Below are positions 1 through 63,570 of a DNA stretch of 64,000 bases, in pieces. The first letter of the stretch is position 1, and every line of letters begins with the position of its first letter. Position numbers and translations under genes: made by a program. The stretch spans positions 14,570,001 to 14,634,000 of the forward strand of contig NC_043024.1 of NCBI RefSeq assembly GCF_006345805.1, in the 5' to 3' direction. The DNA is from Octopus sinensis. Lineage: Eukaryota. The notes beneath the pieces were generated by a model that searched no databases, was not told the origin of the DNA, and saw only the letters and a program-made list of their open reading frames with translations.

Positions 1-282
1 TGTTCCACAAGATGAGCAATGTCAATTTGCATGTATGACTGAATCTAAGCATCTTGAGAGAAAAACCAGGCATAATAAACATCAGATGTGGTGCACATGA
101 GAGGCATCTGTGCTGGTATGGTCATGTATGTATGTATGCATTTCTGTACGCCACAAGGCTTTGGCTGGCCCAAGGCTGTAGTAAAAGACACTTGCCCAAC
201 GTAACCTGTCACACAGTAGGACTCAGTGTGTGAACCATGTGGTTGCTTAAACATTATAATTCTAAGAAAACTTTAAATATTC

Positions 283-319
<37 letters not shown>

Positions 320-1507
320 CGGGAAGGTTTATGAAAATAAACAAAAGACGAAGGCAGGTGGAGTAGAAGCAAACAATGTATTAGTATGGCGCTCAGGAAT
401 AGAAATAGAACAAGTTTTTACATTTTGAGCGTACGCTCTTCGACAGAAAGATACACAGAAAAAACAAGGAGAGAAAAAAATGCGTGTAGGAGCTAACGAT
501 CTATCATGGCGTCCTGACCAAGTGGTTGAGCACTCCACAGACCCATGTACCCTTATATATATATATGTGGAGGCGCAATCGACCAGTGGTTAGGGCAGTG
601 GACTTGTGGTCGTAGGATCGCGGTTTCAATTCCCAGACCGGGCATTGTGAGTGTTTATTAAGTGAAAACACCTAAAGCTGCACGAGGCTCTTTCTTCCTG
701 TTTCTGTTGTACCTGTATTTCAAACGGCCAGCCTTGTCACACTCTGTGTCATGCTGAATCTCCCTGAGAAGTACGTTAAGAGTACACATGTCTGTGGAGT
801 ACTTAGCCACTTGCACATTAATAAATGAGTTGCGACGTCACAGGTGCCAAGCTCTATCAGCCTATTCCTTTCCTTCGATAACACTGTTGCGTAGAGAGGG
901 GAGGCTGGTATGCATGGGCGACTGCTGGTCTTCCATAAACAACCTTGCCCAGACTTATGCCTCAGAGGGTATCTTTCAAATATTCATGACCGAATGGGGT
1001 CACATATATATCATCAAAATAAGCAACAAGAATAACTTCAGTAATTTGGTATGATCGTTTCACACTACATCATTTTATTAAATGTTGTAAGTATTACAAC
1101 AGTTTTAAAATGCTGAGCACTCATCAACCATTAATGGAGGTTTTCCATTAATACATAATTTTCATATCAAGTGATAACATTATAGAGAAGGTAGATATAT
1201 AGACAAAGATGTGGATTTAAATTTTAAGAACAAGGTAACTGACTGAATAATATTCAGTTGCTATGAACTGCTAGAAGATTCTGAGAAGAATGGGCAATTG
1301 AAAGGAGACAAAAAAGATTTTCTATTTATAGAAATAGGGGTGAAATAGATGTCAAAGTTCCATATAAAAAAATTTAGGTACATGTCACATTATTTTAATC
1401 AAAGTTTTTCAAAGAATGCATCTGTACATAATTAGTTAGTGAAAATTTATGTAATTTATTAACTGTGTAAAATTGTATAATACAAATAAATTATTTCTCT
1501 TTTGCAG

Positions 1508-1543
1508 CTGCAAGCACAGGTACTCCAACAGTCTCTTCAGCAG
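1508..1543 (+). CDS. Micro-exon family A ([12 protein letters not shown])
   Basis: ttatttctcttttgcAG|CTGCAAGCACAGGTACTCCAACAGTCTCTTCAGCAG|GTttgt; 36 nt, phase 1-1. Confidence 0.8.
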
Positions 1544-4500
1544 GTTTGTATATTTGATACTAAACCATATGTTTAGTCAATATAATGAAAGTACTTACTA
1601 GGTGTCTAAGTTTACCTTGTCTCTCACAGAATATAACTTATCAGTCTGGGATTAGTTTTAGTTAGGTTCATACAATCTAAAAGAAACAAAAATAAAATTC
1701 AAAAGTAACATTTGATCTTTACTTGTTCGTGTTGGCTGTAAATGTTCACCTCTTGTAGAACCAAGACTGAGGAAATTTTAGTTGGTGTTACTGAAAACTA
1801 TATTCTTCAAGACGACCAGATCCAAGAAACAACTGACACTACCTTAGTCTCGTTGGCTCTAGTAGAACATGTGACAAATGGCTGAACACTGAAATATCAC
1901 CAACTGAATTAAAGATTACTTATATAAATATGAAGAGTCAACTTAGAGCTGAACAGCAGGTCGGGATCTTAGATAATCTGAATTCAATATTCAATAGTGC
2001 CGGTGGCACATAAAAAGCACCATCCAATCGTGGCCTTTTGCAAGCCTCGTCTGGCACCTGTGCAGGTGGCACATAAAAAGCACCCACTACACTCTCGGGG
2101 TGGTTGGCGTTAGGAAGGGCATCTAGCTGTAGAAACGCTGCCAGATGTACTACACTTTTTTTTAGGGATAACACCCTTTTCTTCAAAATAATATGCAGCA
2201 TTCACCTCTGTCATCAAAGCAATTATTTCTGCTTAGTTCATCTTTATGATGCACAGTTCTGATGGTTTAGCCTGCAAATCTTGAGAAAAATCTCTAAATA
2301 AACATGGCATATTCTTTTTGCAAACAACTGTTATTTATTTGATCAAATCCTGCAGGTAACATTTAAAGAATTGTATTAGTTATTAACAATCCAAAAATAA
2401 CATATAATGCAAACAAATTGCTATTTTCTTGCAGGACCAAGTGTATCTGGCATATCTCTCACTCCATCAGGTAAGTACACTTCTACTGTATGTTTAGTGA
2501 TTATTATAAAAGTGTTACTGAATGCAATTTGTGATTCTGTGATAGAATTTATAGCTTATCATAAAGCGGTTTGAAATAATTATCAATAGATGTCTTGCAC
2601 ACAACTTGCACATGCAAGTGCTACCAGTCAAGAACTCTGCATACCAGAAACCAGCTAGTGTATGGGGTCATCAGGAGAGAATGCTCACCATTTTGGGGCC
2701 TACCTCTCGACGGCATCAATGTGCACCAGCCCCCTCACTGATATGAGGCTCTGCTTGCTACATCAACTGGTTATCAAATAAAGCTCAATATTCTTCTAGC
2801 CATCGCTCATCGTCTCTTTTTAACCAAATTCAGTGGCTAGCCTTCTCCACTGTAGTTTGGATATTGGTCACGGTGGGATTGACTTTACAATGAGTTAGGC
2901 CTAACGATAACAACAGTCGTCTCACACTGTGTCCAACGAACCCTCTACATCCAACTTCGAAACATCAGCAACATTCAGCCTGGCTGGGTTCACTTGTGGT
3001 AAAATGCTTACATATGGAGTTGGAACTGTTGTGGTGATAGACAGGAACATTGCAAAGCCAGCAGATCATACAATATTCATTTCTTTCATGCTTTCACATG
3101 TCCTCTGCAATCACAACCCATGTTTCACGACAGAGGAAATGTGAAAGCGTGAAAGAAATGAATCTAGGATGTTCCACAAGATGAGCAATGTCAATTTGCA
3201 TGTATGACTGAATCTAAGCATCTTGAAAGAAAAACCAGGCATAATAAACATCAGATGTGGTGCACATGAGAGGCATCTGTGCTGGTATGGTCATGTATGT
3301 ATGTATGCATTTCTGTACGCCACAAGGCTTTGGCTGGCCCAAGGCTGTACTAAAGGACACTTGCCCAACGTAACCTGTCACACAGTAGGACTCAGTGTGT
3401 GAACCATGTGGTTGCTTAAACATTATAATTCTAAGAAAACTTTAAATATTCATTTCAAATATTGGCTATATATATAACGGGAAGGTTTATGAAAATAAAC
3501 AAAAGACGAAGGCAGGTGGAGTAGAAGCAAACTAATGTATTAGTATGGCGCTCAGGAATAGAAATGGAACAAGTTTTTACATTTTGAGCGTACGCTCTTC
3601 GACAGAAAGATACACAGAAAAAACAAGGAGAGAAAAAATGCGTGTATGAGCTAACGATCTATCATGGCGTCCTGACCAAGTGGTTGAGCACTCCACAGAC
3701 ACATGTACCCTTATATATATATATGTGTGGAGGCGCAATGGACCAGTGGTTAGGGCAGTGGACTTGTGGTCGTAGGATCGCGGTTTCAATTCCCAGACCG
3801 GGCATTGTGAGTGTTTATTAAGCAAAAACACCTAAAGCTGCACGAGGCTCCAGCTGGGGATGGTGGTGAACCCTGCTGTACTCTTTCACCACAACTTTCT
3901 CTCACTCTTTCTTCCTGTTTCTGTTGTACCTGTATTTCAAAGGGCCAGCCTTATCACACTCTGTGTTATGCCGAATCTCCCCAAGAACTACGTTAAGGGT
4001 ACATGTGTCTGTGGAGTGCTCAGCCACTTGCACATTAATAAATGAGTTGCGACGTCACAGGTGCCAAGCTGTATCAGCCTATTCCTTTCCATTCGATAAC
4101 ACTGCTTGCGTAGAGAGGGGAGGCTGGTATGCATGGGCGACTGCTGGTCTTCCATAAACAACCTTGCCCAGACTTATGCCTCAGAGGGTATCTTTCAAAT
4201 ATTTATGACCGAATGGTGTCACATATATATCATCAAAATAAGCAACAAGAATAACATCGGTAATTTGGTATGATCGTTTCGCACTACATCATTTTATTAA
4301 ATGTTGTAAGTATTACAACAGTTTTAAAATGCTGAGCACTCATCAACCCTTAATAGAGGTTTTCCATTAATACATAATTTTCATATCAATTGATAACATT
4401 ATAGAGAAGGTAGATATATAGACAAAGATGTGGATTTAAATTTTAAGAACATTTAAGGTAGTGGAGTTTATCAACTGACTGGATAATATTCAGTTGCTAT

Positions 4501-7500
4501 GAACTGCTAGAAGATTCTGAGAAGAATGGACAATTGAAAGGAGACAAAAAAGATTTTCTATTTATAGAAATAGGGGTGAAATAGATGTCAAAGTTCCATA
4601 TAAAAAAATTTAGGTACATGTCACATTATTTTAATCAAAGTTTTTCAAAGAATGCATCTGTACATAATTAGTTAGTGAAAATTTATGTAATTTATTAACT
4701 GTGTAAAATTGTATAATACAAATAAATTATTTCTCTTTTGCAGCTGCAAGCACAGGTACTCCAACAGTCTCTTCAGCAGGTTTGTATATTTGATACTAAA
4801 CCATATGTTAGTCAATATAATGAAAGTACTTACTAGGTGTCTAAGTTTACCTTGTCTGTCACAGAATATAACTTATCAGTTTTGAATTAGTTTTAGTTAG
4901 GTTCATACAATCTAAAAGAAACAAAAAGAAAATTCAAAAGTAACATTTGAACTTTACTTGTTGGTGTTGGCTGTAAATGTTCACCTCTTGTAGAACCAAG
5001 ACTGAGGAAATTTTAGTTGGTGTTACTGAAAACTATATTCTCCAAAACGACCAGATCCAAGAAACAACTGACACTACCTTAGTCTCGTTGGCTCTAGTAG
5101 AACATGTGACAAATGGCTGAACACTGAAATATCACCAACTGAATTAAAGATTACTTATATAAATATGAAGAGTCAACTTAGAGCTGAACAGCAGGTCGTG
5201 ATCTTAGATAATCTGAATTCAATATTCAATAGTGCCGGTGGCACGTAAAAAGCACCATCCGATCGTGGCCTTTTGCCAGCCTCGTCTGGCACCTGTGCAG
5301 GTGGCACATGAAAAGCACCCATTACACTCTCGGAGTGGTTGGCGTTAGGAAGGGCATCTAGCTGTAGAAACGCTGCCAGATGTACTACACTTTTTTTTAG
5401 GGATAACACCCTTTTCTTCAAAATAATACGCAGCATTCACCTCTGTCATCAAAGCAATTATTTCTGCTTAGTTCATCTTTATGATGCACAGTTCTGATGG
5501 TTTAGCCTGCAAATCTTGAGAAAAATCTCTAAATAAACATGGCATATTCTTTTTGCAAACAACTGTTATTTATTTGATCAAATCCTGCAGGTAACATTTA
5601 AAGAATTGTATTAGTTATTAACAATCCAAAAATAACATATAATGCAAACAAATTGCTATTTTCTTGCAGGACCAAGTGTATCTGGCATATCTCTCACTCC
5701 ATCAGGTAAGTACACTTCTACTGTATGTTTAGTGATTATTATAAAAGTGTTACTGAATGCAATTTGTGATTCTGTGATAGAATTTATAGCTTATCATAAA
5801 GCGGTTTGAAATAATTATCAATAGATGTCTTGCAAACAACTTGCACATGCAAGTGCTACCAGCCAAGAACTCTGCATACTGGAAGCCAGGTAGTGTATGG
5901 GGTCATCAGGAGAGAATGCTCACCATTTTGGGGCCTACCTCTCGACAGCATCAATGTGCACCAGCCACCTCACTGATATGAGGCTCTGCTTGCTAGATCA
6001 GCTGTTTATCAAATAAAGCTCAATATTCTTCTAGCCATCGCTCATCGTCTCTTTTTAACCAAATTCAGTGGCTAGCCTTCTCCACTGTAGTTTGGATATT
6101 GGTCACGGTGGGATTGACTTTACGATGAGTTAGGCCTAACGATAACAACAGTCGTCTCACACTGTGTCCAACGAACCCTCTACATCCAACTTCGAAACAT
6201 CAGCAACATTCAGCCTGGCTGGGTTCACTTGTGGTAAAATGCCTGGATATGGAGTTGAATCTGTTGTGGTGATAGACAGGAACATTGCAAAGCCAGCAGA
6301 TCATACAATATTCATTTCTTTCAAGCTTTTACATGTCCTCTGCAATCACAACCCATGTTTCACGACAGAGGAAATGTGAAAGCGTGAAAGAAATGAATCT
6401 AGGATGTTCCACAAGATGAGCAATGTCAATTTGCATGTATGACTGAATCTAAGCATCTTGAGAGAAAAACCAGGCATAATAAACGTCAGATGTGGTGCAC
6501 ATGACAGGCATCTGTGCTGGTATGGTCATGTATGTATGTATGTATGTATACATTTCTGTATGCAATAAGGCTTTGGCTGGCCCAAGGCTGTAGTAAAAGA
6601 CACTTGCCCAACGTAACCTGTCACACAGTAGGACTCAGTGCGTGAACCATGTGGTTGCTTAAACATTATAATTCTAAGAAAACTTTAAATATTCATTTCA
6701 AATATTGGCTTTATATATATATATATATATATATAACGGGAAGGTTTATGAAAATAAACAAAAGACGAAGGCAGGTGGAGTAGAAGCAAACTAATGTATT
6801 AGTATGGCGCTCAGGAATAGAAATGAAACAAGTTTTTACATTTTGAGCGTACGCTCTTCGACAGAAAGATACACAGAAAAAACAAGGAGAGAAAAAATGC
6901 GTGTATGAGCTAACGATCTATCATGGCGTCCTGACCAAGTGGTTGAGCACTCCACAGACACATGTACCCTTATATATATATATGTGTGGAGGCGCAATGG
7001 ACCAGTGGTTAGGGCAGTGGACTTGTGGTCGTAGGATCGCGGTTTCAATTCCCAGACCGGGCATTGTGAGTGTTTATTAAGCAAAAACACCTAAAGCTGC
7101 ACGAGGCTCCAGCTGGGGATGGTGGTGAACCCTGCTGTACTCTTTCACCACAACTTTCTCTCACTCTTTCTTCCTGTTTCTGTTGTACCTGTATTTCAAA
7201 GGGCCAGCCTTATCACACTCTGTGTTATGCCGAATCTCCCCAAGAACTACGTTAAGGGTACATGTGTCTGTGGAGTGCTCAGCCACTTGCACATTAATAA
7301 ATGAGTTGCGACGTCACAGGTGCCAAGCTGTATCAGCCTATTCCTTTCCCTTTGATAACACTGCTTGCGTAGAGAGGGGAGGCTGGTATGCATGGGCGAC
7401 TGCTGGTCTTCCATAAACAACCTTGCCCAGACTTATGCCTCAGAGGGTATCTTTCAAATATTCATGACCGAATGGTGTCACATATATATCATCAAAATAA

Positions 7501-10500
7501 GCAACAAGAATAACATCGGTAATTTGGTATGATCGTTTCGCACTACATCATTTTATTAATGTTGTAAGTATTACAACAGTTTTAAAATGCTGAGCACTCA
7601 TCAACCATTAATAGAGGTTTTCCATTAATACATAATTTTCATATCAATTGATAACATTATAGAGAAGGTAGATATATAGACAAAGATGTGGATTTAAATT
7701 TTAAGAACATTTAAGGTAGTGGAGTTTATCAACTGACTGGATAATATTCAGTTGCTATGAACTGCTAGAAGATTCTGAGAAAAATGGACAATTGAAAGGA
7801 GACAAAAAAGATTTTCTATTTATAGAAATAGGGGTGAAATAGATGTCAAAGTTCCATATAAAAAAATTTAGGTACATGTCACATTATTTCAATCAAAGTT
7901 TTTCAAAGAATGCATCTGTACATAATTAGTTAATGAAAATTTATGTAATTTATTAACTGTGTAAAATTGTATAATACAAATAAATTATTTCTCTTTTGCA
8001 GCTGCAAGCACAGGTACTCCAACAGTCTCTTCAGCAGGTTTGTATATTTGATACTAAACCATATGTTTAGTCAATATAATGAAAGTACTTACTAGGTGTC
8101 TAAGTTTACCTTGTCTGTCACAGAATATAACTTATCAGTCTGGGATTAGTTTTAGTTAGGTTCATACAATCTAAAAGAAACAAAAATAAAATTCAAAAGT
8201 AACATTTGATCTTTACTTGGTGTTGGCTGTAAATGTTCACCTCTTGTAGAACCAAGACTGAGGAAATTTTAGTTGGTGTTACTGAAAACTATATTCTTCA
8301 AGACGACCAGATCCAAGAAACAACTGACACTACCTTAGTCTCATTGGCTCTAGTAGAACATGTGACAAATGGCTGAACACTGAAATATCACCAACTGAAT
8401 TAAAGATTACTTATATAAATAAGAAGAGTCAACTTAGAGCTGAACAGCAGGTCGTGATCTTAGATAATCTGAATTCAATATTCAATAGTGCCGGTGGCAC
8501 GTAAAAAGCACCATCCGATCGTGGCCTTTTGCCAGCCTCGTCTGGCACCTGTGCAGGTGCCACATAAAAAGCACCCATTACACTCTCGGAGTGGTTGGCG
8601 TTAGGAAGGGCATCTAGGTGTAGAAACGCTGCCAGATGTACTACACTTTTTTTTAGGGATAACACCCTTTTCTTCAAAATAATACGCAGCATTCACCTCT
8701 GTCATCAAAGCAATTATTTCTGCTTAGTTCATCTTTATGATGCACAGTTCTGATGGTTTAGCCTGCAAATCTTGAGAAAAATCTCTAAATAAACATGGCA
8801 TATTCTTTTTGCAAACAACTGTTATTTATTTGATCAAATCCTGCAGGTAACATTTAAAGAATTGTATTAGTTATTAACAATCCAAAAATAACATATAATG
8901 CAAACAAATTGCTATTTTCTTGCAGGACCAAGTGTATCTGGCATATCTCTCACTCCATCAGGTAAGTACACTTCTACTGTATGTTTAGTGATTATTATAA
9001 AAGTGTTACTGAATGCAATTTGTGATTCTGTGATAGAATTTTTAGCTTATCATAAAGCGGTTTGAAATAATTATCAATAGATGTCTTGCAAACAACTTGC
9101 ACATGCAAGTGCTACCAGCCAAGAACTCTGCATACTGGAAGCCAGGTAGTGTATGGGGTCATCAGGAGAGAATGCTCACCGTTTCGAGGCCTACCTCTCG
9201 ACAGCATCAATGTGCACCAGCCACCTCACTGATATGAGGCTCTGCTTGCTAGATCAGCTGTTTATCAAATAAAGCTCAATATTCTTCTAGCCATCACTCA
9301 TCGTCTCTTTTTAACCAAATCCAGTGGCTAGCCTTCTCCACTGTAGTTTGGATATTGGTCACGGTGGGATTGACTTTACGATGAGTTAGGCCTAACGATA
9401 ACAACAGTCGTCTCACACTGTGTCCAACGAACCCTCTACATCCAACTTCGAAACATCAGGAACATTCAGCCTGGCTGGGTTCACTTGTGGTAAAATGCTT
9501 ACATATGGAGTTGGAACTGTTGTGGTGATAGACAGGAACATTGCAAAGCCAGCAGATCATACAATATTCATTTCTTTCATGCTTTCACATGTCCTCTGCA
9601 ATCACAACCCATGTTTCACGACAGAGGAAATGTGAAAGCGTGAAAGAAATGAATCTAGGATGTTCCACAAGATGAGCAATGTCAATTTGCATGTATGACT
9701 GAATCTAAGCATCTTGAAAGAAAAACCAGGCATAATAAACATCAGATGTGGTGCACATGAGAGGCATCTGTGCTGGTATGGTCATGTATGTATGTATGTA
9801 TGTATGTATGCATTTCTGTATGCCACAAGGCTTTGGCTGGCCCAAGGCTGTAGTAAAAGACACTTGCCCAACGTAACCTGTCACACAGTAGGACTCAGTG
9901 TGTGAACCATGTGGTTGCTTAAACATTATAATTCTAAGAAAACTTTAAATATTCATTTCAAATATTGACTATATATATATATATAACGGGAAGGTTTATG
10001 AAAATAAACAAAAGACGAAGGCAGGTGGAGTAGAAGCAAACTAATGTATTAGTATGGCGCTCAGGAATAGAAATAGAACAAGTCTTTTACATTTTGAGCG
10101 AACGCTCTTCGACAGAAAGATACACAGAAAAAACAAGGTGAGAAAAAATGCGTGTAGGAGCTAACGATCTATCATGGCGTCCTGACCAAGTGGTTGAGCA
10201 CTCCACAGACACATGTACCCTTATATATATATATGTGTGGAGGCGCAATGGACCATTGGTTAGGGCAGTGGACTTGTGGTCGTAGGATCGCGGTTTAAAT
10301 TCCCAGACCGGGCATTGTGAGTGTTTATTAAGCAAAAACACCTAAAGCTGCACGAGGCTCCAGCTGGGGATGGTGGTGAACCCTGCTGTACTCGTTCACC
10401 ACAACTTTCTCTCACTCTTTCTTCCTGTTTCTGTTGTACCTGTATTTCAAAGGGCCAGCCTTATCACACTCTGTGTTATGCCGAATCTCCCCAAGAACTA

Positions 10501-13500
10501 CGTTAAGGGTACATGTGTCTGTGGAGTGCTCAGCCACTTGCACATTAATAAATGAGTTGCGACGTCACAGGTGCCAAGCTGTATCAGCCTATTCCTTTCC
10601 ATTCGATAACACTGGTCGCGTGGAGAGGGGAGGCTGGTATGCATGGGCGACTGCTGGTCTTCCATAAACAACCTTGCCCAGACTTATGCCTCAGAGGGTC
10701 ACTTTCAAATATTCATGACCGAATGGGGTCACATATATATCATCAAAATAAGCAACAAGAATAACATCGGTAATTTGGTATGATCGTTTCACACTACATC
10801 ATTTTATTAAATGTTGTAAGTATTACAACAGTTTTAAAATGCTGAGCACTCATCAACCCTTAATAGAGGTTTTCCATTAATACATAATTTTCATATCAAG
10901 TATTAACATTATAGAGAAGGTAGATATACAGACAAAGATGTGGATTTAAATTTTAAGAACATTTAAGGTAGTGGAGTTTATCAACTGACTGGATAATATT
11001 CAGTTGCTATGAACTGCTAGAAGATTCTGAGAAGAATGGACAATTGAAAGGAGACAAAAAAGATTTTCTATTTATAGAAATAGGGGTGAAATAGATGTCA
11101 AAGTTCCATATAAAAAAATTTAGGTACATGTCACGTTATTTTAATCAAAGTTTTTCTCAGAATGCATCTGTACATAATTAGTTAGTGAGAATTTATGTAA
11201 TTTATTAACTGTGTAAAATTGTATAATACAAATAAATTATTTCTCTTTTGCAGCTGCAAGCACAGGTACTCCAACAGTCTCTTCAGCAGGTTTGTATATT
11301 TGATACTAAACCATATGTTTAGTCAATATAATGAAAGTACTTACTAGGTGTCTAAGTTTACCTTGTCTGTCACAGAATATAACTTATCAGTCTGGGATTA
11401 GTTTTAGTTAGGTTCATACAATCTAAAAGAAACAAAAATAAAATTCAAAAGTAACATTTGATCTTTACTTGGTGTTGGCTGTAAATGTTCACCTCTTGTA
11501 GAACCAAGACTGAGGAAATTTTAGTTGGTGTTACTGAAAACTATATTCTTCAAGACGACCAGATCCAAGAAACAACTGACACTACCTTAGTCTCATTGGC
11601 TCTAGTAGAACATGTAACAAATGGCTGAACACTGAAATATCACCCACTGAATTAAAGATTACTTATATAAAAAAGAAGAGTCAACTTAGAGCTGAACAGC
11701 AGGTCGGGATCTTAGATAATCTGAATTCAATATTCAATAGTGCCGGTGGCACGTAAAAAGCACCATCCGATCGTGGCCTTTTGCCAGCCTCGTCTGGCAC
11801 CTGTGCAGGTGGCACATAAAAAGCACCCATTACACTCTCGGAGTGGTTGGCGTTAGGAAGGGCATCTAGCTGTAGAAACGCTGCCAGATGTACTACACTT
11901 TTTTTTAGGGATAACACCCTTTTCTTCAAAATAATACGCAGCATTCACCTCTGTCATCAAAGCAATTATTTCTGCTTAGTTCATCTTTATGATGCACAGT
12001 TCTGATGGTTTAGTCTGCAAATCTTGAGAAAAATCTCTAAATAAACATGGCATATTCTTTTTGCAAACAACTGTTATTTATTTGATCAAATCCTGCAGGT
12101 AACATTTAAAGAATTGTATTAGTTATTAACAATCCAAAAATAACATATAATGCAAACAAATTGCTATTTTCTTGCAGGACCAAGTGTATCTGGCATATCT
12201 CTCACTCCATCAGGTAAGTACACTTCTACTGTATGTTTAGTGATTATTATAAAAGTGTTACTGAATGCAATTTGTGATTCTGTGATAGAATTTATAGCTT
12301 ATCATAAAGCGGTTTGAAATAATTATCAATAGATGTCTTGCACACAACTTGCAAATGCAAGTGCTACCAGCCAAGAACTCTGCATACCGGAAGCCAGCTA
12401 GTGTATGGGGTCATTAGGAGGGAATGCTCACCGTTTCGGGGCCTACCTCTCGACACCATCAATGTGCACCAGCCCCACTCACTGATATGAGGCCCTGCTT
12501 GTTAGATCAGCTGGTTATCAAATAAAGCTCAATATTCTTCTAGCCATCGCACATCGTCTCTTTTTAACCAAATCCAGTGGCTAGCCTTCTCCACTGTAGT
12601 TTGGATATTGGTCACGGTGGGATTGACTTTACGATGAGTTAGGCCTAACGATAACAACAGTCGTCTCACACTGTGTCCAACGAACCCTCTAAATCCAACT
12701 TCGAAACATCAGAAACATTCAGCCTGGCTGGGTTCAGTTGTGGTAAAATGCTTACATATGGAGTTGGAACTGTTGTGGTGATAGACAGGAACATTGCAAA
12801 GCCAGCAGATCATACAATATTCATTTCTTTCAAGCTTTTACATGTCCTCTGCAATCACAACCCATGTTTCATGACAGAGGAAATGTGAAAGCGTGAAAGA
12901 AATGAATCTAGGATGTTCCACAAGATGAGCAATGTCAATTTGCATGTATGACTGAATCTAAGCATCTCGAGAGAAAAACCAGGCATAATAAACGTCAGAT
13001 GTGGTGCACATGAGAGGCATCTGTGCTGGTATGGTCATGTATGTATGCATTTCTGTACGCCACAAGGCTTTGGCTGGCCCAAGGCTGTAGTAAAGGACAC
13101 TTGCCCAACGTAACCTGTCACACAGTAGGACTCAGTGTGTGAACCATGTGGTTGCTTAAACATTATAATTCTAAGAAAACTTTAAATATTCATTTCAAAT
13201 ATTGACTATATATATATATATAACGGGAAGGTTTATGAAAATAAACAAAAGACGAAGGCAGGTGGAGTAGAAGCAAACAAATGTATTAGTATGGCGCTCA
13301 GGAATAGAAATAGAACAAGTCTTTTACATTTCGAGCCTACGCTCTTCGACAGAAAGATACACAGAAAAAACAAGGAGAGAAAAAAATGCGTAGGAGCTAA
13401 CGATCTATCATGGCGTCCTGACCAAGTGGTTGAGCACTCCACAGACACATGTACCCTTATATATATATATGTGGAGGTGCAATGGACCAGTGGTCAGGGC

Positions 13501-16179
13501 AGTGGACTTGTGGTCGTTGGATTGTGGTTTAAATTCCCAGACGGGGCATTGTGAGTGTTTATTGAGCGAAAACACCTAAAGCTGCATGAGGCTCCAGCAG
13601 GATATGGTGGTGAACCCTGCTGTACTCTTTCAACACAACTTTCTCTCACTCTTTCTTCCTGTTTCTGTTGTACCTGTATTTCAAAGAGCCAGCCTTATCA
13701 CACTCTGTGTCATGCTGAATCTCCCCAAGAACTACGTTAAGGGTACATGTGTCTGTGGAGTGCTCAGCCACTTGCACATTAATAAATGAGTTGTGACGTC
13801 ACAGGTGCCAAGCTGTATCAGCCTATTCCTTTCCCTTTGATAACACTGCTTGCGTGGAGAGGGGAGGCTGGTATGCATGGGCGACTGCTGGTCTTTCATA
13901 AACAACCTTGCCCAGACTTATGCCTCAGAGGGTATCTTTCAAATATTTATGACCGAATGGGGTCACATATATATCATCAAAATAAGCAACAAGAATAACA
14001 TCGGTAATTTGGTATGATCGTTTCGCACTACATCATTTTATTAAATGTTGTAAGTATTAATACATAATTTTCATATCAAGTATTAACATTATAGAGAAGG
14101 TAGATATACAGACAATGATGTGGATTTAAATTTTAAGAACATTTAAGGTAGTGGAGTTTATCAACTGACTGGATAATATTCAGTTGCTATGAACTGCTAG
14201 AAGATTCTGAGAAGAATGGACAATTGAAAGGAGACAAAAAAGATTTTCTATTTATAGAAATAGGGGTGAAATAGATGTCAAAGTTCCATATAAAAAAATT
14301 TAGGTACATGTCACATTATTTTAATCAAAGTTTTTCTCAGAATGCATCTGTACATAATTAGTTAGTGAAAATTTTATGTTGATATATACGTAAGCATACA
14401 TATATTTGTGTGTGTGTGTGGATCAGCTAAACCATCGGATTTGTGTGTGTGTGTGTGTGTGGATCAGGCACCCCACCGGAGCCTCGTGGAGCTTAGGTGT
14501 TTTTGGTCAATAAACACTCACAATACCTGGTCTGGGAATCGAAACTATTCTCATGACCGTGAGTCCACTGCCCTAACTACTGGGCCATTGCGCTTCCACT
14601 CTGCTGCTGTTTTTATGTCCCTGTAAGTAAACTGATAGAATAAGTATTGGGGTCAGTTCATTTGACTAAAATTTTTCAAGGCTGTGCCCCTGCATGGCTC
14701 CAGTCTAACAACTGAAACAGCTGGGAGAAGTGGGTGAAAGAATGACATATATGGAGTAATGAGTTTTTGAAATGATGAATGAACGAATGGATGGTGGATG
14801 CAAATATTGGGTTGTCCGGAAAGTTTGTGCCGATTTATAGCAGCTTACCTTTCGACTTATTTTAGAACATGGTTCAGTCCATAAAATAGGATTTCACTAC
14901 ACCTCCATTTAGAGCACAGTTTAAGCTATCTTTTCGTGGAAGAGGGTTTATGTTCCTATAACCTGTGTTAATTCTGTAACCCTTAAAATTTTCTGGAACA
15001 AGTAAAATATATCATGATATTCAGTGTGGAAAATTACATCAATGTACCAAATTTTAGAATTTTCAATAAACTTTGAAATTTGCACAGGTGCACCCTAACA
15101 GAAAAGATTCAGGCATTATATTGGGTTGTCCGGGAAGTTTGTGCCGATTTATAGTAGCTTACCTTTTGACTTAATTTAGAACATGGTTGGGTCCATAAAA
15201 TAGGATTTGACTACACCTCCATTTAGAGCACAGTTTAAGCTATCTTTTCTTGGAAGAAGGTTTATGTACCTATAACTTGTGTTAATTCTGTAAGCCTTTA
15301 AAATGGAAGATAAGAAAGTTCATTTCGGCACTTGATGCTTTGGGAACCAGACAAAAATTGCTGCAGCTCGGTTGGGATGTGTTACCCCACCCTCCATATT
15401 CACCAGATATTGCTCCTTCGGATTTCCACTTATTCAGGTCTCTGCAGAATAGTCTTAATGGTAAAAATTTCAATTCCTTGGAGGACATAAAAAGATACCT
15501 TGATGAATTCTTTGCCATGAAACTACCTCAATTCTGGGAAGAGGGTATTTTTGAGAAAAAAGAAAGATAGAGATGCATTGTGAAACAAAATGGTTCATAT
15601 TTGGTTGATTAAAAATGTAATGGCAAGTATTTATTGACCCTTTTTCTTTCCTTTAAAAAGCAGCACAAACTTTCCGGACAACCCAATAGCATTTCTGAAG
15701 AGTTGATACTCAGATTACTACTCCGAGTGAGCAGTAAATGTTACAGTACAAAGGACAGTGTGTCATTGAGAGTTTTAATCACACATACTCAATGGTCTAT
15801 CGTTGTAAATGAGTTGTATTCTCATGTATTTAAGTAAACAACTTGAAATATCCATAGATAATCATATGTGAATTTAAATGTAAGTCTCTGTTTTTTTCTA
15901 ATGAAATCTTCAGTAATATATACGTACATTTGAAGTATGTTTTCTGTAAACCAGTTTATAATAGAAGTATTTCAATCTTTTACAGGTACAACTGGTCCAT
16001 CTGTTTCCTTCACAGGTATATATATATGCTTAACACTAAATAATTCCTATGAGGAAATCACTGTCTCCTTCTGTAGATTATGTTTTACATATTATGTTGT
16101 TGTGGTTTCTCATCCTAAATGAATGAATTGATTTGGATGCCTTATTATGATAGGATTTCATGTATGTTTAATTCCATGT

Positions 16180-16213
<34 letters not shown>

Positions 16214-16410
16214 AATGTAGGATAAAATTCTTTTCGAAAAAAAATTCTTTTCGAAAAAAATTTTATCAATGGCCAGCATATTTAAAAATACCTTTAAAAG
16301 TTAAATTTATAGCGTGCATATTGTGAAAAAATTATATGGTAAATGGACAATATGTCCAATTTTTCGGCATATTTGGCATTAGAAATTTTTTCATTTGCCC
16401 TTATTTATGA

Positions 16411-16449
<39 letters not shown>

Positions 16450-16751
16450 AGGCTCAATGGTCCAGTGGTTAGGGCAGCGGACTCGCGGTAGTAGGATCTC
16501 GATTTTGATTCCCAGATCAGGCGTTGTGAGTATTTATTGAGCAAAAACACCTAAAGCTCCAAGAGACTCCGGCAGGGGATGGTGGCGATCCCTGCTGTAC
16601 TCCTTCACGACAACTTTCTCTCATTCTTTCTTCTGTTGGTCTGCTCGCTTAGCCAGCGGGGTGGCGTCATTTGAAGGCTAAAACAATGCGAAGTGCATTG
16701 TGACCAGCGATGTGTAGTAACATCTGATGGCCTGGTCGGTCATGTGACATG

Positions 16752-16792
<41 letters not shown>

Positions 16793-17432
16793 TATATATA
16801 TACATACATACACACACACATATATATATGCATATATGGGTACAAGACATCACCAACTGTGTAAACAACATGAAGTACGAAAACAAACAAGTTAAATACA
16901 CAAACAACGAGAGAAAAAAAATGGAAAACGGGACAAGTAACACTGAAAATGACCCTTCATCAGTTGTCCGCTGTCTGTCTATTCCTCATTTCGAGCATTC
17001 AACGACAATATGAGTGTTCGAAGACAGTTGCTCCCATAAATACCAAAATAAGATTTTGGATTTATAGCAGGTGAAAGTTGGGAACAACAACTGGACAGGG
17101 GAGACATACAAGGAAAACAAACATAGAGGGTCGTTAGACACACTCACACACATATCTCAGTATTGAGCACACTATCATATGCTGTTATACATTGCTGGGT
17201 ACAATGCGCTTCATATTGATACTATCTATCTGGCTAGGGGAGCAGGCCAATATTTCTCTTGATCGAAAGGTTACTCCATCACAGGGTTACGCATTCACAG
17301 CTGAGTGAACTGAAAAGCTGTGTTTTCCTCAAGAACAAAATATGTCTCCCAGTCTAGGAATCAAACTCATGGTCTAGTGATTGTGTGGGCAATGCTCTGA
17401 TCATTTGGCCATTCACATAAATACACACACAA

Positions 17433-17503
<71 letters not shown>

Positions 17504-17737
17504 AAGGGAAAGTTTACGAAAATAAACAAAAGACCAAGGCAGGTGGAGTACAAACAAACAAATGTATTAGTATAATGCTTGGGAATTGAAAAAGTCTTTT
17601 ACGTTTTGAGCCTACGCTCTTTGACAGAAAGATACACAGAAAAAAACGAGAGAAACAAGGAAAGAAAAATATGCTTTTGGTTGTAGATATATGTATATGT
17701 GTGTATATATACGTGTACACATGTGCCTGCATATCTA

Positions 17738-17788
<51 letters not shown>

Positions 17789-20700
17789 ATATATATATAT
17801 ATATAAAGGAAAGAATTTATAGAGTCAAAAAGTAGAAGGAGTACATTATGTAATTTATTAACTGTGTAAAATTGTATAATACAAATAAATTATTTCTCTT
17901 TTGCAGCTGCAAGCACTGGTGCTCCAACAGTTTCTTCAGCAGGTTTGTATATTTGATACTAAACCATATGTTTAGTCAATATAATGAAAGTACTTACTAG
18001 GTGTCTAAGTTTACCTTGTCTGTCACAGAATATAACTTATCAGTCAGGGATTAGTTTTAGTTAGGTTCATACAATCTAAAAGAAACAAAAAGCAAATTCA
18101 AAAGTAATATTTGATCTTTACTCGTTGGTGTTGGCCGTAAATGTTCACCTCTTGTAGAACCAAGACTGAGGAAATTTTACAGTCAATGTTACTGATAGAC
18201 TGAAAACTATATTCTCCAAAAACCAATTCCAATAAATGACTGACATGATTTTAGTCTCATTAGTTCTAAACAGAACAAGTGACAAATGGTGAAATACTGA
18301 AACATCACTTAGTAACTAAAAGACCATTACCTTAGTTATATAAAGATGTAGAGTGAACTTAGAACCAAGCAGCAGGTTATCATTTTGGATAATCTAAATT
18401 CCTCAAGGAATGTGAAGATGCAGGCTGGAAAGCGGAACATTTTCCAATCGAAGTTGGATGTGGAGGGTTCGTTGGACACAGTGTGAAACGACTGTTGTTA
18501 TCGCTAGGCCTAACTCATCGTAAAGTCAATCCCACCGTGACCGATATCCAATCTACAGTGGAGAAGGCTAGCCACTGGATTTGGTTAAAAAGAGACGATG
18601 AGCGATGCCTAGAAGGATATTGATCTTTATTTGATAACCAGCTGATCTAGCAAGCGGGGCCTCATATCAGTGAGTGGGGCTGATGCGCATTGATGCCATT
18701 GAGAGGTAGGCCCCGAAACGGCGCGCATTCTCTCCTGATGACCCCATACACTTGCTGGTTTCCGGTATACAGAGCTTTTGACTGGTAGCACTTGCATGTG
18801 CAAGTTGTTTGCAAGACATATACAGGTGAAAGATCAAATATCAAAATATTAATTCATACCAAACTCAAAAGTGTCAGGCCAGGGAGAAATGAACACTAAT
18901 TCTTAAGTTGGAATATGGGCTGAATAAGAGAATCGTTGTCAGTACAACTGACCCGCAGATCAAGGAAGATGTAAATGAAAACCCACAATTTCAAAGCTAG
19001 TTTTGGGTAGATTCATTGCTTTATTGAGAGACATGAACTTTCATATCACAACTGGACGCAATGCCTAAAACTGCTTGCAGATTTTGAAGATTACTTACAG
19101 GAGTTTTAGCAGTTCATAATTAGCTGATGAGGAGAGCTAATGTATCTAAGATACTATTTTTATCAAAATATTAGTTCTACAAGCCACATTGATTTATTTA
19201 TTCATGCTAGCATTACCCATGGAAATTTTTTCGATTGTTGTAATTTTTTATGGAGCCATATATATTATTGTTCCTTCATAAATTTCGTCATCATCATTTA
19301 ATATCCATTGTCCATGCTGGCATGGGCTGGGCAGTTTGACCAGGGCTGATAAGCTGAAGGGCTGCACCAGACTACAGTCTGATTTGGCATGGTTTCTGAG
19401 ATTGTAATAAGTGCTTTTACATGCCACTGGCATGGGTGCCAGTTGTGTGACACCAGTATATTGCCACAACTACGATTTCACTTGGCTTGATGGGTCTTCT
19501 ATTCAAACACAGTATGTTACCAAGCTCTTGGGCATTTGCCATTGCCTCCGTGAAGCCCAATACTTGAAAGGTGTTCTTTCTGTGTCACCAACATAGATCT
19601 GGTTATGCGACACTGCCATCAGTCACATTGCCTCTGTGAGACCCTTCACTTGAAAGGTGCTTTTTACAGGCCACCAACACAACCACATTACTTCAGTGGG
19701 GCCCAATGCTTGAAAGGTTTTTCTACAGGTCACTGGCACAGGTGCCAGTTGCGTGACACCAGCATTGACCATGACCACAATTTCACTTGGTTTGATGGTC
19801 TTCTCAAGAATGGCATATTGCCAAAGGTCTCGGTCACTAGTCATTGCTTCTGTGAGATCCAACATTCAAAGATCATGCTTCACCACTTTGTCTCATGTCT
19901 TCTTGGCTCTGCCTCTTCCACGGGATCCCTCCGCAATTAGAGGTTGGCACTTCTTTACACAGCTATCCTCATCCATACACATCATATGATCATACCAGCT
20001 TAGTCTTCTCTTTTGTAGACTACATCTGATGCCTCTTATACCCAACTTTTCTCTCAAGACGCTTACACTCTGTTGAACATAGATACCAACATTGCACATC
20101 CAGTGAAGAATGCTAGCTTCATTTCTTACAAGCCTACACCTGTCTTTGGTCACCGCAGCCCATGTGTCACTGCCATATAGCATAGCTGTTTGTAAGCAGG
20201 CATCATACAGTCTGTCTTTCATTCTGAGGGAAAGGCCCTTTGTTGCCAACAGGAGTAGGAACTCTATTCTCACAGCTATGCTCCTGGAGCATCCACCTCT
20301 GGTACTGATTTGGTCACCTAGATAACAGAAGCTGTCAACTACTTCTAGCTTACCCCACTGGCAACCTTTCAGTTTTTTCTAGATAAGGCTGTTATTGAGG
20401 GAGCACAATTTTCCTATTATCTCAACAGTTCAGGGGTTCATTTATAAATCTAAGAGTTTCACAATGATTATAGAGAATATTTATGTCCCCAGTATTGTAA
20501 CTTTCAACCACATTTTTCGTGTATTTGACAATCTCATTTTCATTTTATATTCTATCTTGAACCCATTCCCTTATCTCTTATCAATACTCTCTCTATATAT
20601 ACTCTTTGATTCATATTTTCTGTTCTACATGTTGATGCTCTTTTTCTTGCTCTAGTGATTCAGCCATCCGTTTCTCTTTACATTGTTGTATATACAACTA

Positions 20701-22088
20701 GCAGTATCGCCCGGCATTGCTCGGGCTTGTAAGGGAAATAACTATATAAGCATTTTTAGAGAGTTACTTCCCTTATTGATACTATCTTGGCATCTTAGGC
20801 AAGTGTCTTCTACTATAGCCTCAGGCCAACCAAAACCTTGTGAGTGGATTTGGTAGACGGAAACTGAAACAAGCCTGTTGTATATATGTGTATATATATA
20901 TATGTGTGTGTGTGTGTGTATATGTTTGTGTATTTGATTTCGTCCCCCCAACATCACTTGACAACCAATGCTGGTGTGTTTACGTCCCCGTAACTTAGCG
21001 GTTCAGCAATAGAGACCGATAGAATAAGTACTAGGCTTACATAGAATTAGTCCTGTGGTCGATTTGCTCGACTAAAGGCGGTGCTCCAGCATGGCCACAG
21101 TCAAATAACTGAAACAAGTAAAAGAGTAAAGAGCATCTGTATAATTACAGAAATTGTTTCTCTATATAGCCCGTGGTTATTATTTAAACAAAAATATATT
21201 GTAAGATTTAGAAGTATATTTATAACATATCAAAGATTTCTTTTAGTTATTATGATTAAAACAAAGAGATTTTATAATACAAAATCGTTGATACTTTATT
21301 GCAGCACCCAGATTAGCTGGCCCATCGATTACTCCAACAGGTAAGAACAGTTTTATTGCATGTTTGGTCATCACAATAAAAGTATTACTGTATCTAATGA
21401 GTTACTGTGTGATACAATTTTAGTTTAGCATCAAGTGTTTTATTTTAATTATGATTAACATGTGGAGATGCAATGGCCCAGTGGTTAGGGCAGTGGACAT
21501 ATGTAAGCAAAAATCATTAAAAATGCGGAAAAATGATGGTAATTTTTTTTTAAATTGTAGACTCATCGTAGATGCGCCCTAATACCCAGAAGGGCTCAAT
21601 ATGAATCACGACTATAAGATACCCACTTTTGGTTAAACTGCACCGCAAAATGTGGGAGTAGTTAGGAATCTAAATCGAGTAGACAGACTCTCACACAACT
21701 TCAGTTTTATATATAAAGATGTCATTATTTCTCTTGTCAGCTAACATTGTCTGTCATTCATATTTTATACATAAATATCAATTTCCAAGTGAGCAGGCAC
21801 TAAATAATTGCACTTACGTGCATGCTTCAGGTAATTGGCAATGTAGAAAAATTTAGTTCAATATAAAAAAAAATACACTTTCCACTTTTGCTAACCCCTG
21901 CCCCTCCCCCCACCACTACCATCATTATAGTTTTCAGAAGTGAACCTCAGTCTGAGTTGGTTGCCAATTTACTAACCACAGTTATTTCATTTCATTCTTT
22001 ATATCTAATTTTTTTGCTGTCAGTACAAAGCTTGAATAAGGATTTCTAAAAACTAATAGCATCTACATCTATATAATAAAAAAAAAAA

Positions 22089-22133
<45 letters not shown>

Positions 22134-25100
22134 AATAATAATGATAATAATAATAATGATAATAATAATAATGATAATAATAATAATAAAAATAATAATA
22201 ATATTAATAGTAATAATTATGATGATGATAATGATAACAACAATAATAATAATAATAATAATAATAATTAATAATACGTTTATATATTTGTTGAGCAAGA
22301 TTTTTTATGTGAAATCGTGTGTTGAAACAGATATTGTTGTATTTCGGAATGGTCATTTTGCCAGTTTAGCCAATAAAAACACACGCACTATATATTTGGT
22401 GTTACTTTGCTTCAGTGTTATTTATTTTGTGACAAAAGAACTCTGGCCGAAATAAGATTAAGATTAATGTAAAAAATAAATAACACTGAAGCAAAGTAAC
22501 ACCAAATATATAGTGCGTGTGTTTTTATTGGCTAAACTGGCAAAATGACCATTCCGAAATATAACAATAATAATAATAATAGTAATAATAATAATAATAA
22601 TAATAATGATAATAATAACGAAATTATTGTATACAGTGCTCAGGTGCACCACAACTTGTCAATAGTGCGTATAAAGCATATGCAGTAATGTACAAATGTC
22701 TGGGAAGTGAACAGTGTATGAGTCAGATACATGCTTGCGTGTGTATGGAGGGGGGAAAATCAGGTGTATATATCTATAAGTTTATATATCTATAAGCTTA
22801 CTATCACATCTATGTAAGCCTTCCTTCTTCTCCCTCAAGCAATTGGGGTGTATTTCAATGTTGATAGATAAATAGATCGATAGATGGAAGATATAAAAAG
22901 TTTGATATTAGAATTTTATTTTCTTGTCAGTCACAATAATATATGTTGTTTAAAATTTTCACTCTGTTGCTCTCCCTCTTTTGCTCTCTATCTCCAACTT
23001 CAAGAAACCTTTTTACCATGTTATTCTCCTCTTCACATCATTATCATTTCTCTCTTTCTTTTTCTCTTTGCCTCTCACTTCCATTAGTCACATGACAGGT
23101 GGTAATAATGACACTATACCCACCTCCACACACACTTTCTCTCTCTTTCTCTCCTAAACATTTTCTTTCTCTCTCTTTCTCTCCTAAACATTTTCTTTCT
23201 CACTCTCTATATATCAATCCCTTCAACTAACTTTTTAAACGCATACACTGGCGAAAATAAATTTAAGACCGATGATAAAAGTTCTAGTCCTGTGCACAAA
23301 GCCAAAAAGGTTATGGAATTTTTTGATCACCATAATATTGACGTAATCGAATGGCCTCCCCAGGGTCCAGACCTCAATCCAATTGAGAACTTGTGGAATT
23401 AAGTTTCCAAAAAAAGTCCATGCTAAAAAAAACCATCTAATCTAAAATAATTTTTTTTTTTCCTCTAGTTTCAGCTCAGAGCTGCGGCCATGCTGATGCA
23501 CCGCCGTTTGTACAACAGGGATCGCCACCCCCTGCCGGAGCCTCGTGGAGCTTCTTTTAAGTGTTTTCACTCAGAAACACTCACAATGCCCGATCTGGGA
23601 ATTGAAACCGCGATCCTACAACCGCGAGTCCACTGCCCTAACCACTGGGCCATTGCGCTATAATTATTCGATTATATCAATGAAATATGGCAAGATATTC
23701 CCATAGAATTTTGTAATCACTTAGCGAATTCAATACTGAGGCGTTGTTCAGCCGTTATTAAGAATAAAGACTATGGCACAAAGTACTAATATGTATTTCG
23801 TTCTTGTTGCTCATTTTTGCTACAATCTTAAGCTTTAAATAAAATTATAATGATACAGTCTTAAACTAATTTTGCCGGTAAATTTGAAACGTTTATATTA
23901 ATTTAGCATTAGAAGTCTTCAAGTTGTACAAAAATAGTTTATCATTCAAAAGAGAAATAAATTCTGCATAAGGTGTAAAAGATAAAAATAATTTGTATGG
24001 TGTTAGAAACAAAATATTTTGTAAGAAATAGAAATTTTATCGTAAAGTGTACTAGCCATCTGAATGTGGCTAGCCACTGGGGGTGGGGTGTTACTGATGC
24101 TTTTAGCCCCAGGAGATCAACGTCACCAGCTGGCCTTAGACACAAAATTTCAGTGCCCTTGTGTTATTTGCAAAGGGAGGTCATCCTCCCTCGAAAACCT
24201 AAGTGATACATACTATTTGCAGAGGGTCTCCTTCATCGAAAGCCGGTGTTTACCATGCATTGACGAGAGGCAATTACCTTGAAACTATAGTCCGTATGTA
24301 TCACTTAGGTTTTCGAGGGAGGATGACCTCCCCTTTGCAAATAACACAAGGGCACTGAAATTTTGTGTCTAAGGCCAGCTAGTGACGTTGATCTCCTGGG
24401 GCTAAAAGCATCAGTAACACCCCACCCCCAGTGGCTAGCCACATTCAGATGGCTAGTACACTTTACGTTGTCGAGCGGTTACTGTTTATATCTCGTTCAG
24501 AGATTTATTAAAGAAATTTTATCATCGGTCTTAAATTTATTTTCGCCAGTGTAATAGCTACTACGTTCCACTTCACATCTTTAAGACTTCTCACTCTCTC
24601 TTTCCCTCTTGATCTTTGCCTGTTTCCCTTTAACTAATCGTATGGTAGCATAACACATTTCAACCTTAGCCTATAAGTATATTTATTTCTCTAATTGTCT
24701 TTCACTCTCTTCCTCAATATTGATCACTCTTTCACAGTCAAACAGCTGGGTGGAACTGTGCAAAAAATTACACAGATGTGTAGAATGTTCTGGTGGTGAG
24801 GCTGGGCTTTGTATTTTTCATAACTCCCATGGTTACCAAGATAATCTACTCTAATAATACTCTTGTGTTTATGAATGAGAAAGGAAGGGGTGATGTCATT
24901 TATTTGTATTTCAATTAAAAGAAAATATTTTCAGGGTTTTGAAGAAAGGTTTTCAATTTTCTATGAAAACAAAAAATATAAGAAATTCTACCATAATTTC
25001 ATGGGACATACTAAACATTTCTATAAGTTATTAAGATTAAAAGGGATTCTAATACAAAATCGTTAATACTTTATTGCAGTCCCCAGAATAACTGGCCCAT

Positions 25101-25718
25101 CTGGTACTCCAAATGGTAAGTACAGTTTTATTGTATGATTAGTCATAAAAAAGATAAACGTTGTCCCTTTCAAGCCTAACCAGGCTCATGGGCCCAGTTT
25201 CCCAGTTTTTGTGGTGTATGTGTTCCCTCCAGCTGAACAGGATGCCAGTCCATTGCAGTGTTACTCGAGAAACAGAGAGAGAGTAAGAGAAAGTTGTGGC
25301 GAAAGAGTACAAGAGGGGTCACTACCATCCCCTGCAGGAGCCTCGTGGAGCTTTTAGGTGTTTTTGCTCAATAAACACACACAACACCTGGTCCGGGAAT
25401 CGAAACCGCGATCCTCCAACCACGAGCCCACTGCCCTAACCACTGGGTCATTGCGCCTCCACTATGATTAGTCATCACGGTGAAAGTATTAATGGATACA
25501 ATGAGTTATTCAGTGATAGGATTTCAGCCTAGCATCAAGTGTTTTATTTTAATTATGAATAACATATGAAGCTATTTCTCATCAGATTCAATCAGTGTAG
25601 CCAGGTGAAGTCATGTGGAACATTAGTGTACATGATATATATTGGGAGTTTAACCTGTGCTGTGTGTATGTATTTGTTTTTCTTGAAGAAATCCCTTCTA
25701 ACATTTAAAGAAATGAGC

Positions 25719-34650: not shown

Positions 34651-34690
<40 letters not shown>

Positions 34691-52557: not shown

Positions 52558-52594
<37 letters not shown>

Positions 52595-63491: not shown

Positions 63492-63570
63492 GGCGGTTTA
63501 GCTTAAAGGTTTAGAGCACCGCGACACATAATCACGGAGGTGTGAGTTCAAGTCTCATAGCCAGCCACCA
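63492..63570 (+). tRNA. tRNA-Met(CAT)-like sequence, probably a pseudogene, ending in CCA
   Basis: Cloverleaf by eye: acceptor GGCGGTT/AGCC[A]GCC with a 1-nt bulge, D arm, anticodon stem CCGCGA/TCACGG with loop CACATAA, T arm GTGAG-TTCAAGT-CTCAT, then ACCA and T6 four nt later. Confidence 0.6.

Follow-up and report, generated by a model that had tools for sequence, protein, structure and literature searches.

In a 64,000-nt window of the Octopus sinensis genome (contig NC_043024.1, positions 14,570,001 to 14,634,000 of the forward strand; all coordinates below are those of the window), positions 1-14379 are taken up by a head-to-tail array of 3.25-kb units. We consider it probable, though well short of certain, that this is the right part of a genuine exon-intron cassette array in a large + strand animal gene coding for a mucin-like region. 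The coding sequence of that gene across the window would consist only of mini-exons of 30 or 36 nt, each in phase 1/phase 1, lying between repeat-rich introns, and every array unit would contribute one exon A and one exon B, that is 72 nt or 24 residues, with the frame unchanged. The window as a whole is eukaryotic, has ~37% G+C and is rich in microsatellites.

The array was delimited by a direct-repeat search and by BLAST, as the longest period reported by Tandem Repeats Finder is 500 and a 3.25-kb array is thus outside its range. The array has a period of 3235-3260 bp. The direct repeats are spaced 3219-3260 nt from start to start, and the unit at 3501-6760, when searched against the window by BLAST, gives full-length matches at 96.6-98.2% identity. 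With the unit register set by position 3501 and the second full unit (U2, 3501-6759) taken as the reference, the array on the + strand begins with the tail of a unit (U0p, 1-342, unit positions ~2905-3260; 96.5-98.2% identity to the other units), whose exons lie to the left of the window. This is followed by U1 (343-3500), which carries a 57-nt and a 13-nt deletion, by U2, U3 (6760-10009) and U4 (10010-13246), and finally by the partial unit U5p (13247-14379), which ends at unit position ~1188, 56 nt short of the expected start of exon A, and holds no exon. Given that the array continues past the left edge of the window, its size of 4.4 units (14379/3250) is only a minimum. The pairwise identity of the full units U1-U4 is 97.46-98.71%; U2 and U3 are the most alike (98.71%), while U5p is the most diverged (95.9-96.8%). 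A first-pass annotation made from the sequence had described at least 4.4 near-identical units, and both searches bear this out, with the qualification that "near-identical" is slightly too strong for units that differ by 1.3-2.5%.

The mini-exon core was found by aligning diverged + strand copies of unit positions 1118-1720 and 1947-2323. What the aligned copies share is a pyrimidine tract ending in AG, exactly 36 nt, and then GT. Within the array unit the core occurs twice: as exon A, CTGCAAGCACAGGTACTCCAACAGTCTCTTCAGCAG, preceded by ttttgcag and followed by gtttgt, and as exon B, GACCAAGTGTATCTGGCATATCTCTCACTCCATCAG, preceded by tcttgcag and followed by gtaagt. Both are 36 nt long and phase 1/phase 1, such that their first two bases complete a codon and their last base starts the next. 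Exon A lies on the + strand at 1508-1543 in U1, 4744-4779 in U2, 8002-8037 in U3 and 11254-11289 in U4; the corresponding positions of exon B are 2435-2470, 5670-5705, 8926-8961 and 12178-12213. There are exactly two such in-phase candidates per unit, amounting to 72 nt or 24 codons with the frame kept, and neither differs in sequence among the four full units, just as had been annotated. No open reading frame (ORF) of more than 95 codons is present in the unit, and its stop-to-stop ORFs look non-coding. The proposed gain of 24 residues per 3.25-kb unit is therefore well supported from sequence alone, by the 72 nt, the phase 1-1 boundaries and the open frame.

Downstream of the array, 13 diverged paralogs of these mini-exons were found, all on the + strand. 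Three are older A-type mini-exons of 36 nt (17907-17942, 27071-27106 and 43724-43759), four are B'-type mini-exons of 36 nt (21305-21340, 25080-25115, 30965-31000 and 46856-46891), and four are older B-type mini-exons of 36 nt (34282-34317, 52211-52246, 55649-55684 and 60091-60126); the remaining two are the 30-nt mini-exon C (15986-16015; TTGPSVSFT) and its paralog at 41532-41561. These older A, B, B' and C paralogs are spread over 15-60 kb at 60-90% identity, the spacing between mini-exons is 0.9-7 kb, and each block of 10-12 codons is an exon of its own. An nhmmer profile of the exon with 60-nt flanks gives 22 matches on the + strand of the window and 0 on the - strand; likewise, a scan of the - strand identical to that of the + strand returns no 36-nt candidate. 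All A-type exons share the donor CAG/GTTTGT with T at +3 (for example 1543/1544, 4779/4780, 17942/17943, 27106/27107 and 43759/43760), while the B-type exons have CAG/GTAAGT. A exons may be weaker, alternatively included cassettes.

Across the window, the pyrimidine tract, the AG and the GT are kept in 21/21 mini-exon copies. Among the 13 paralogs, gapped alignment columns number 0/36 in the exon, as against 47/78 upstream and 33/76 downstream. When the 21 exons are joined, frame 2 is open for 247 codons and frame 0 has many stops. Furthermore, frame 2 has a strong codon structure: C makes up 62% of codon position 2, versus 18% and 14% of positions 1 and 3, A occurs at position 2 in only 2/176 codons, and G at position 3 in only 1/176, an avoidance that persists in every exon family. 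The chi-square test for this periodicity gives p=1e-43 with the 15 distinct exons and still p=5e-10 with only four family representatives, whereas control 36-mers from the flanks have no periodicity (p=0.19 and 0.16). The peptide is composed of 22.9% Ser, 17.7% Thr, 14.9% Pro, 11% Gly and 10% Ala, with 3% Arg, no Asp, Glu or Lys and no Cys. Ser, Thr and Pro together thus account for 55% of an unbroken frame, which is a mucin-like composition. Since the periodicity is strong in the exons and absent from their flanks, these observations support a real Ser/Thr/Pro-rich coding region, and we judge the use of A and B as coding exons in frame 2 to be rather likely on this evidence.

Several results nevertheless weigh against that conclusion. 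Within exon families, substitutions are distributed over the codon positions as 13/14/11, with no third-position excess, and the exon mismatch of 10.6-15.7% compares with 9.2-12.9% in the upstream 70 nt, so that the exons are not better kept than their ±70-nt flanks. Taken together, the even substitutions and the lack of extra exon conservation mean that no purifying selection on residues is visible, and the exon periodicity could be a relic. Frame 1 is likewise open across all 21 exons; its product has no matches and is without the compositional pattern of frame 2. The A-type donor GTTTGT is a weak site. Database searches were negative as well: the spliced 199-aa peptide has no match at E<=1e-3 in the protein collection, no Pfam family scores above its cut-off with either open frame of the joined exons, and the A-exon core has no match in a metagenome scan. 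The negative of the peptide search carries little weight because the collection has in effect no entries for this species or for any close relative: 10 ORFs of the window are themselves not found there, and the reverse-transcriptase (RT) ORF of a long interspersed nuclear element (LINE) in the window matches just 4 proteins, at <=64% identity, from short contigs of GCA_024449705.1 and of an ENA metagenome.

These same points supply the case for the most serious rival, namely that the tandem duplication is real and that A and B are unused, or were never used, and sit in neutral intronic or dead-gene DNA. The absent third-position excess, nearby intron as conserved as the exons, the weak A donor and the failure to find a homologous protein at E<=1e-3 all agree with it, and so does the invariance of the exons among units. 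The first-pass annotation had noted that the 72 nt are identical in all full units; the identity itself holds, but its value as a sign of constraint does not. Of the 36-nt windows in the unit, 26% are without a variable column, and the chance of finding two such windows is ~7%. Moreover, the invariant stretch extends 65 and 29 nt around A and 164 and 81 nt around B, which sits in a 280-nt invariant run. We therefore rejected the A/B identity as a sign of selection, given that it is expected from recency. What the relic explanation does not account for is that 21/21 copies keep AG/GT, length and open frame despite 10-16% divergence within and ~35-50% between families. By a rough estimate, neutral decay should have produced ~3-7 changes in splice dinucleotides and ~3 indels, and 0 are seen. 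In addition, the avoidance of A at position 2 and of G at position 3 recurs in every family, and the splice contexts of the array exons do not differ from those of the older paralogs. We hence regard relic exons as unlikely. As far as can be judged, what is kept in these putative exons is splice signals, length, phase and composition, and not residue identity.

A related observation is that 5362-5786, together with its equivalents in U1, U3 and U4, has only 2 variable columns in 424 nt, far fewer than the 7% that is average for the unit; it includes the 280-nt invariant run, which is mostly intron around exon B. Either local conversion or constraint on splicing-regulatory sequence could explain this.

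A second rival holds that the assembled number of units is wrong, through the joining of two haplotypes or through collapse, so that 4.4 units would exist on no real chromosome. Multi-kb tandem repeats are a classic assembly problem, the window edge cuts the array, and a difference of 1.3-2.5% between units is within the range of heterozygosity of some invertebrates. Nevertheless, the alignment of U1-U4 has 122 columns with single-nucleotide polymorphisms (SNPs) and 119 indel columns, and private SNPs are found in every unit (38 in U1, 19 in U2, 10 in U3, 30 in U4, and 15 per 1053 aligned nt in U5p). The unit thus exists in six different versions, each with SNPs and indels of its own, which means at least 3 units per haplotype even if two haplotypes were merged; two-haplotype mis-joining alone cannot account for the array. 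Neither is there a period-2 similarity pattern, which would make U1 most like U3 and U2 most like U4, and the window has 0 N bases. Similarity also declines toward the edge unit, as in a real array. The argument from unit-private SNPs against a pure assembly artefact, already made in the first-pass annotation, is thereby strengthened, and we think an artefact quite improbable.

The distribution of shared variants provides evidence on how the array has evolved. SNPs that divide U1-U4 two by two support each of the three possible partitions (13, 6 and 5 sites), with the sites of different partitions interleaved along the unit. Such incompatible partitions cannot arise from a simple duplication tree and indicate unequal exchange or gene conversion between units. 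The similarity peak in mid-array (U2-U3) and the minimum at the edge (U5p) likewise fit an array that exchange has homogenised. Unequal crossing-over had been proposed as the driving process; past exchange between units is supported by the mosaic of shared SNPs, which fits either unequal crossing-over or gene conversion.

The unit had also been described as a patchwork of debris from transposable elements (TEs), and this applies to about a third of it. Interspersed repeat in both orientations makes up ~1000 nt (unit positions 178-539, 1733-1881, 2325-2695, 2793-2863 and 3067-3114). Old gene-internal paralogy accounts for a further ~1200 nt, all of whose copies are on the + strand; it comprises unit positions 3223-135 together with the segments that carry A and B. 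For the last ~1050 nt, no further copy was found when a unit was compared by BLAST with the remainder of the window. Roughly one third gene-internal paralogy and one third sequence that is single-copy in the window thus stand beside the TE-derived third. In the reference unit, the interspersed repeat at 3677-4030 (unit positions 178-539) has a tRNA-like core flanked by 37-nt inverted repeats (3677-3713 and 3994-4030), and copies of it occur elsewhere in both orientations. Its short interspersed nuclear element (SINE) at 3715-3990, with a tRNA-like head (GGTTAGGGCAGTGGAC...GGTTTCAATTCCCAGACCGGGC), has about 11 other copies in both orientations, and we presume that it resembles SINEs of cephalopods (octopus).

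The third rival, that the unit and its "exon" segments are a composite transposon or macrosatellite with accidental splice- and ORF-like features, is highly improbable: even though ~1/3 of the unit is interspersed repeat in both orientations and the window has many copies of the segments that bear A and B, the exon-segment profile matches 22/22 on the + strand where true interspersed repeats lie on both strands, the boundaries of exon-bearing segments are not sharp and depend on TE insertions that vary from copy to copy, no target-site duplication or terminal repeat is seen at these boundaries, and codon periodicity is restricted to the 36 nt.

Two further candidates were tried and rejected. 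The B segment was considered as a mobile element on account of coinciding BLAST boundaries at 5592/5823, and was dismissed upon inspection of the flanks. The conserved + strand block of ~140 nt at 5447-5590, which ends in CTGCAG/GTAAC, was considered as a third exon; visual inspection showed that every frame is interrupted by stops and that a usable acceptor is lacking, so that the block is taken to be non-coding. Its copies, always on the + strand, lie at 32948, 33137, 35339, 49321, 55428, 55915, 56138 and 59866, some of them in tandem, and it is not always beside a B exon.

Returning to the cassette array, its right end may preserve a trace of its origin. The array ends in TTATGT (14374-14379), and unit homology restarts at 17846, again with TTATGT (17846-17851; unit position 1183). 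From there the homology is only 87% identical and is part of the older A paralog at 17907. The two hexamers enclose a 3466-nt block (14380-17845, + strand) that holds mini-exon C. The TTATGT pair could be the mark of a deletion through microhomology that gave rise to the compact A-B unit ahead of its amplification, or it could be coincidence; alternatively, the footprint may be related to an insertion tied to the origin of the compact unit.

Duplication does not appear to be confined to the array. Patches of 94-97% identity link exon-bearing segments that are neither adjacent nor collinear (25006-25718 with 46782-47494, 27581-28606 with 44678-45703, and 34260-35170 with 52189-53095). They suggest gene conversion or further young duplications outside the array, so that the mini-exon region as a whole is still subject to duplication or conversion. 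At 1.3-2.5% divergence, the array is the most recent part of a much larger region of repeated mini-exons, which takes up the entire 64-kb window.

Pfam matches elsewhere in the window are a mariner transposase (Transposase_1, E=3.5e-15) and fragments of reverse transcriptase and integrase. A 183-nt unit occurs twice in tandem at 80% identity (35496-35858), adjoining an rve match at 36548-36841 (-) and an RVT_1 match at 38301-38684 (+). Two near-palindromes of ~430-460 nt, at 24041-24467 (89.5% self-complementary) and 53668-54131 (79.7%), resemble foldback elements or miniature inverted-repeat transposable elements. The Rfam scan has no match in the array and a single tRNA in the whole window, a lone tRNA-Met (CAT) at 63492-63566 (+), which scores 32.4 bits, is also called by ARAGORN and could be either a functional gene or the head of a SINE.

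The cassette reading can be put as a sequence of steps. Mini-exons spliced together in frame 2 would yield a Ser/Thr/Pro-rich, uncharged, Cys-free, mucin-like low-complexity region, and the array would be the youngest level in a hierarchy of exon-cassette duplications. If A and B are spliced in and translated, as we infer, then the product would presumably be O-glycosylated, and unequal crossing-over would vary the copy number of cassettes, and hence the length of the protein, between individuals. The locus is probably a coding tandem array of exon-intron cassettes, which is a known architecture, and a candidate, not a demonstrated, variable-number tandem repeat (VNTR). A bolder extension, which we hold to be possible but doubtful, is that the mucin-like stalk of a giant animal gene is encoded wholly by dozens of phase-symmetric mini-exons of 10-12 codons, scattered among repeat-rich introns; its length would be tuned by cassette copy number, through the 3.25-kb array and the patches of 94-97% identity elsewhere in the gene, and by exon skipping. 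Selection would then act on the splice signals, on the length of the exons and on their content of Ser, Thr and Pro, and not on residues. No domain-encoding exon or folded domain is present in the window, and the ends of the gene lie outside it.

Should the exons be used and their copy number be variable, the locus would be a clean non-vertebrate case of protein-length variation through exon-intron cassettes and not through minisatellites within an exon. A mucin-like domain built of 12-codon mini-exons would also be an unusual gene architecture. In practical terms, gene predictors will miss or miscount exons of this kind, and assemblies built from short reads will collapse the array, which makes the locus a useful test case for annotation and for long-read assembly.

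The principle involved is not new: given that LPA, DMBT1, NBPF and the Flag silk gene already establish it, no new class of mechanism is proposed here. In LPA, the KIV-2 unit codes for a folded kringle domain of 114 aa from two exons of about 160-180 nt. Its units are 5.6 kb long with two exons each, and an allele has 1-40 of them (PMC11462820, PMC6314250). The octopus array is similar in that nearly identical multi-kb two-exon cassettes lie head to tail in a gene, each adding a fixed in-frame block and carrying unit-specific variants; it differs in that the block would comprise 24 low-complexity residues of Ser/Thr/Pro type, encoded by two exons of 36 nt, and not a kringle. Furthermore, polymorphism is proven for LPA, whereas the present array is known from one assembly.

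DMBT1 is the gene of a secreted mucin-like glycoprotein that includes short Ser/Thr/Pro-rich spacer (SID) exons. In human DMBT1 (SALSA/gp340), copy-number variation of SRCR-SID units alters the number of protein modules (PMC4851238, PMC9038570). Tandem exon cassettes of a few kb are common to both loci. Unlike those of the octopus window, which codes for no folded domain, the DMBT1 units are dominated by the exon of the folded SRCR domain.

For the silk genes Nephila Flag and Argiope MaSp2, which code for repetitive structural proteins, PMC3563967, citing Hayashi & Lewis 2000, describes iterated exon-intron modules in which the introns are nearly identical within the gene and the exons evolve at least as fast. 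The present array resembles them both in its iterated modules and in having flanks as conserved as the exons or more so. However, the exons of silk genes measure hundreds of nt to kb and are rich in Gly, Pro and Ala, as opposed to the 30-36-nt, Ser/Thr/Pro-rich candidates described here, and there is no sequence relation between the two. The PEVK region of titin offers a different parallel, with many small, phase-symmetric, alternatively usable exons that code for a disordered segment and include tandemly duplicated exon blocks. The mini-exon region likewise has a long run of small symmetric exons with tandem block duplication; PEVK exons, in contrast, are ~75-90 nt and Pro/Glu/Val/Lys-rich, while the octopus peptide has no Glu, Lys or Asp and is 3% basic.

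Finally, a search of the literature for mucin-like repeats coded by separate duplicated exons found nothing relevant. Classical mucins (MUC1, MUC2 and MUC5AC) have Ser/Thr/Pro-rich tandem repeats, the number of which sets the length of the protein. The predicted octopus product is comparable in composition (55% Ser, Thr and Pro) and in organisation, with a 24-aa repeat present four times plus 13 related modules of 10-12 aa. The repeats of classical mucins, on the other hand, are of tens of nt within one large exon, where here they would be units of 3.25 kb that are mostly intron. If the stalk reading were true, cassettes of this kind would be another way for a genome to achieve what classical mucins achieve with a VNTR in a single exon.

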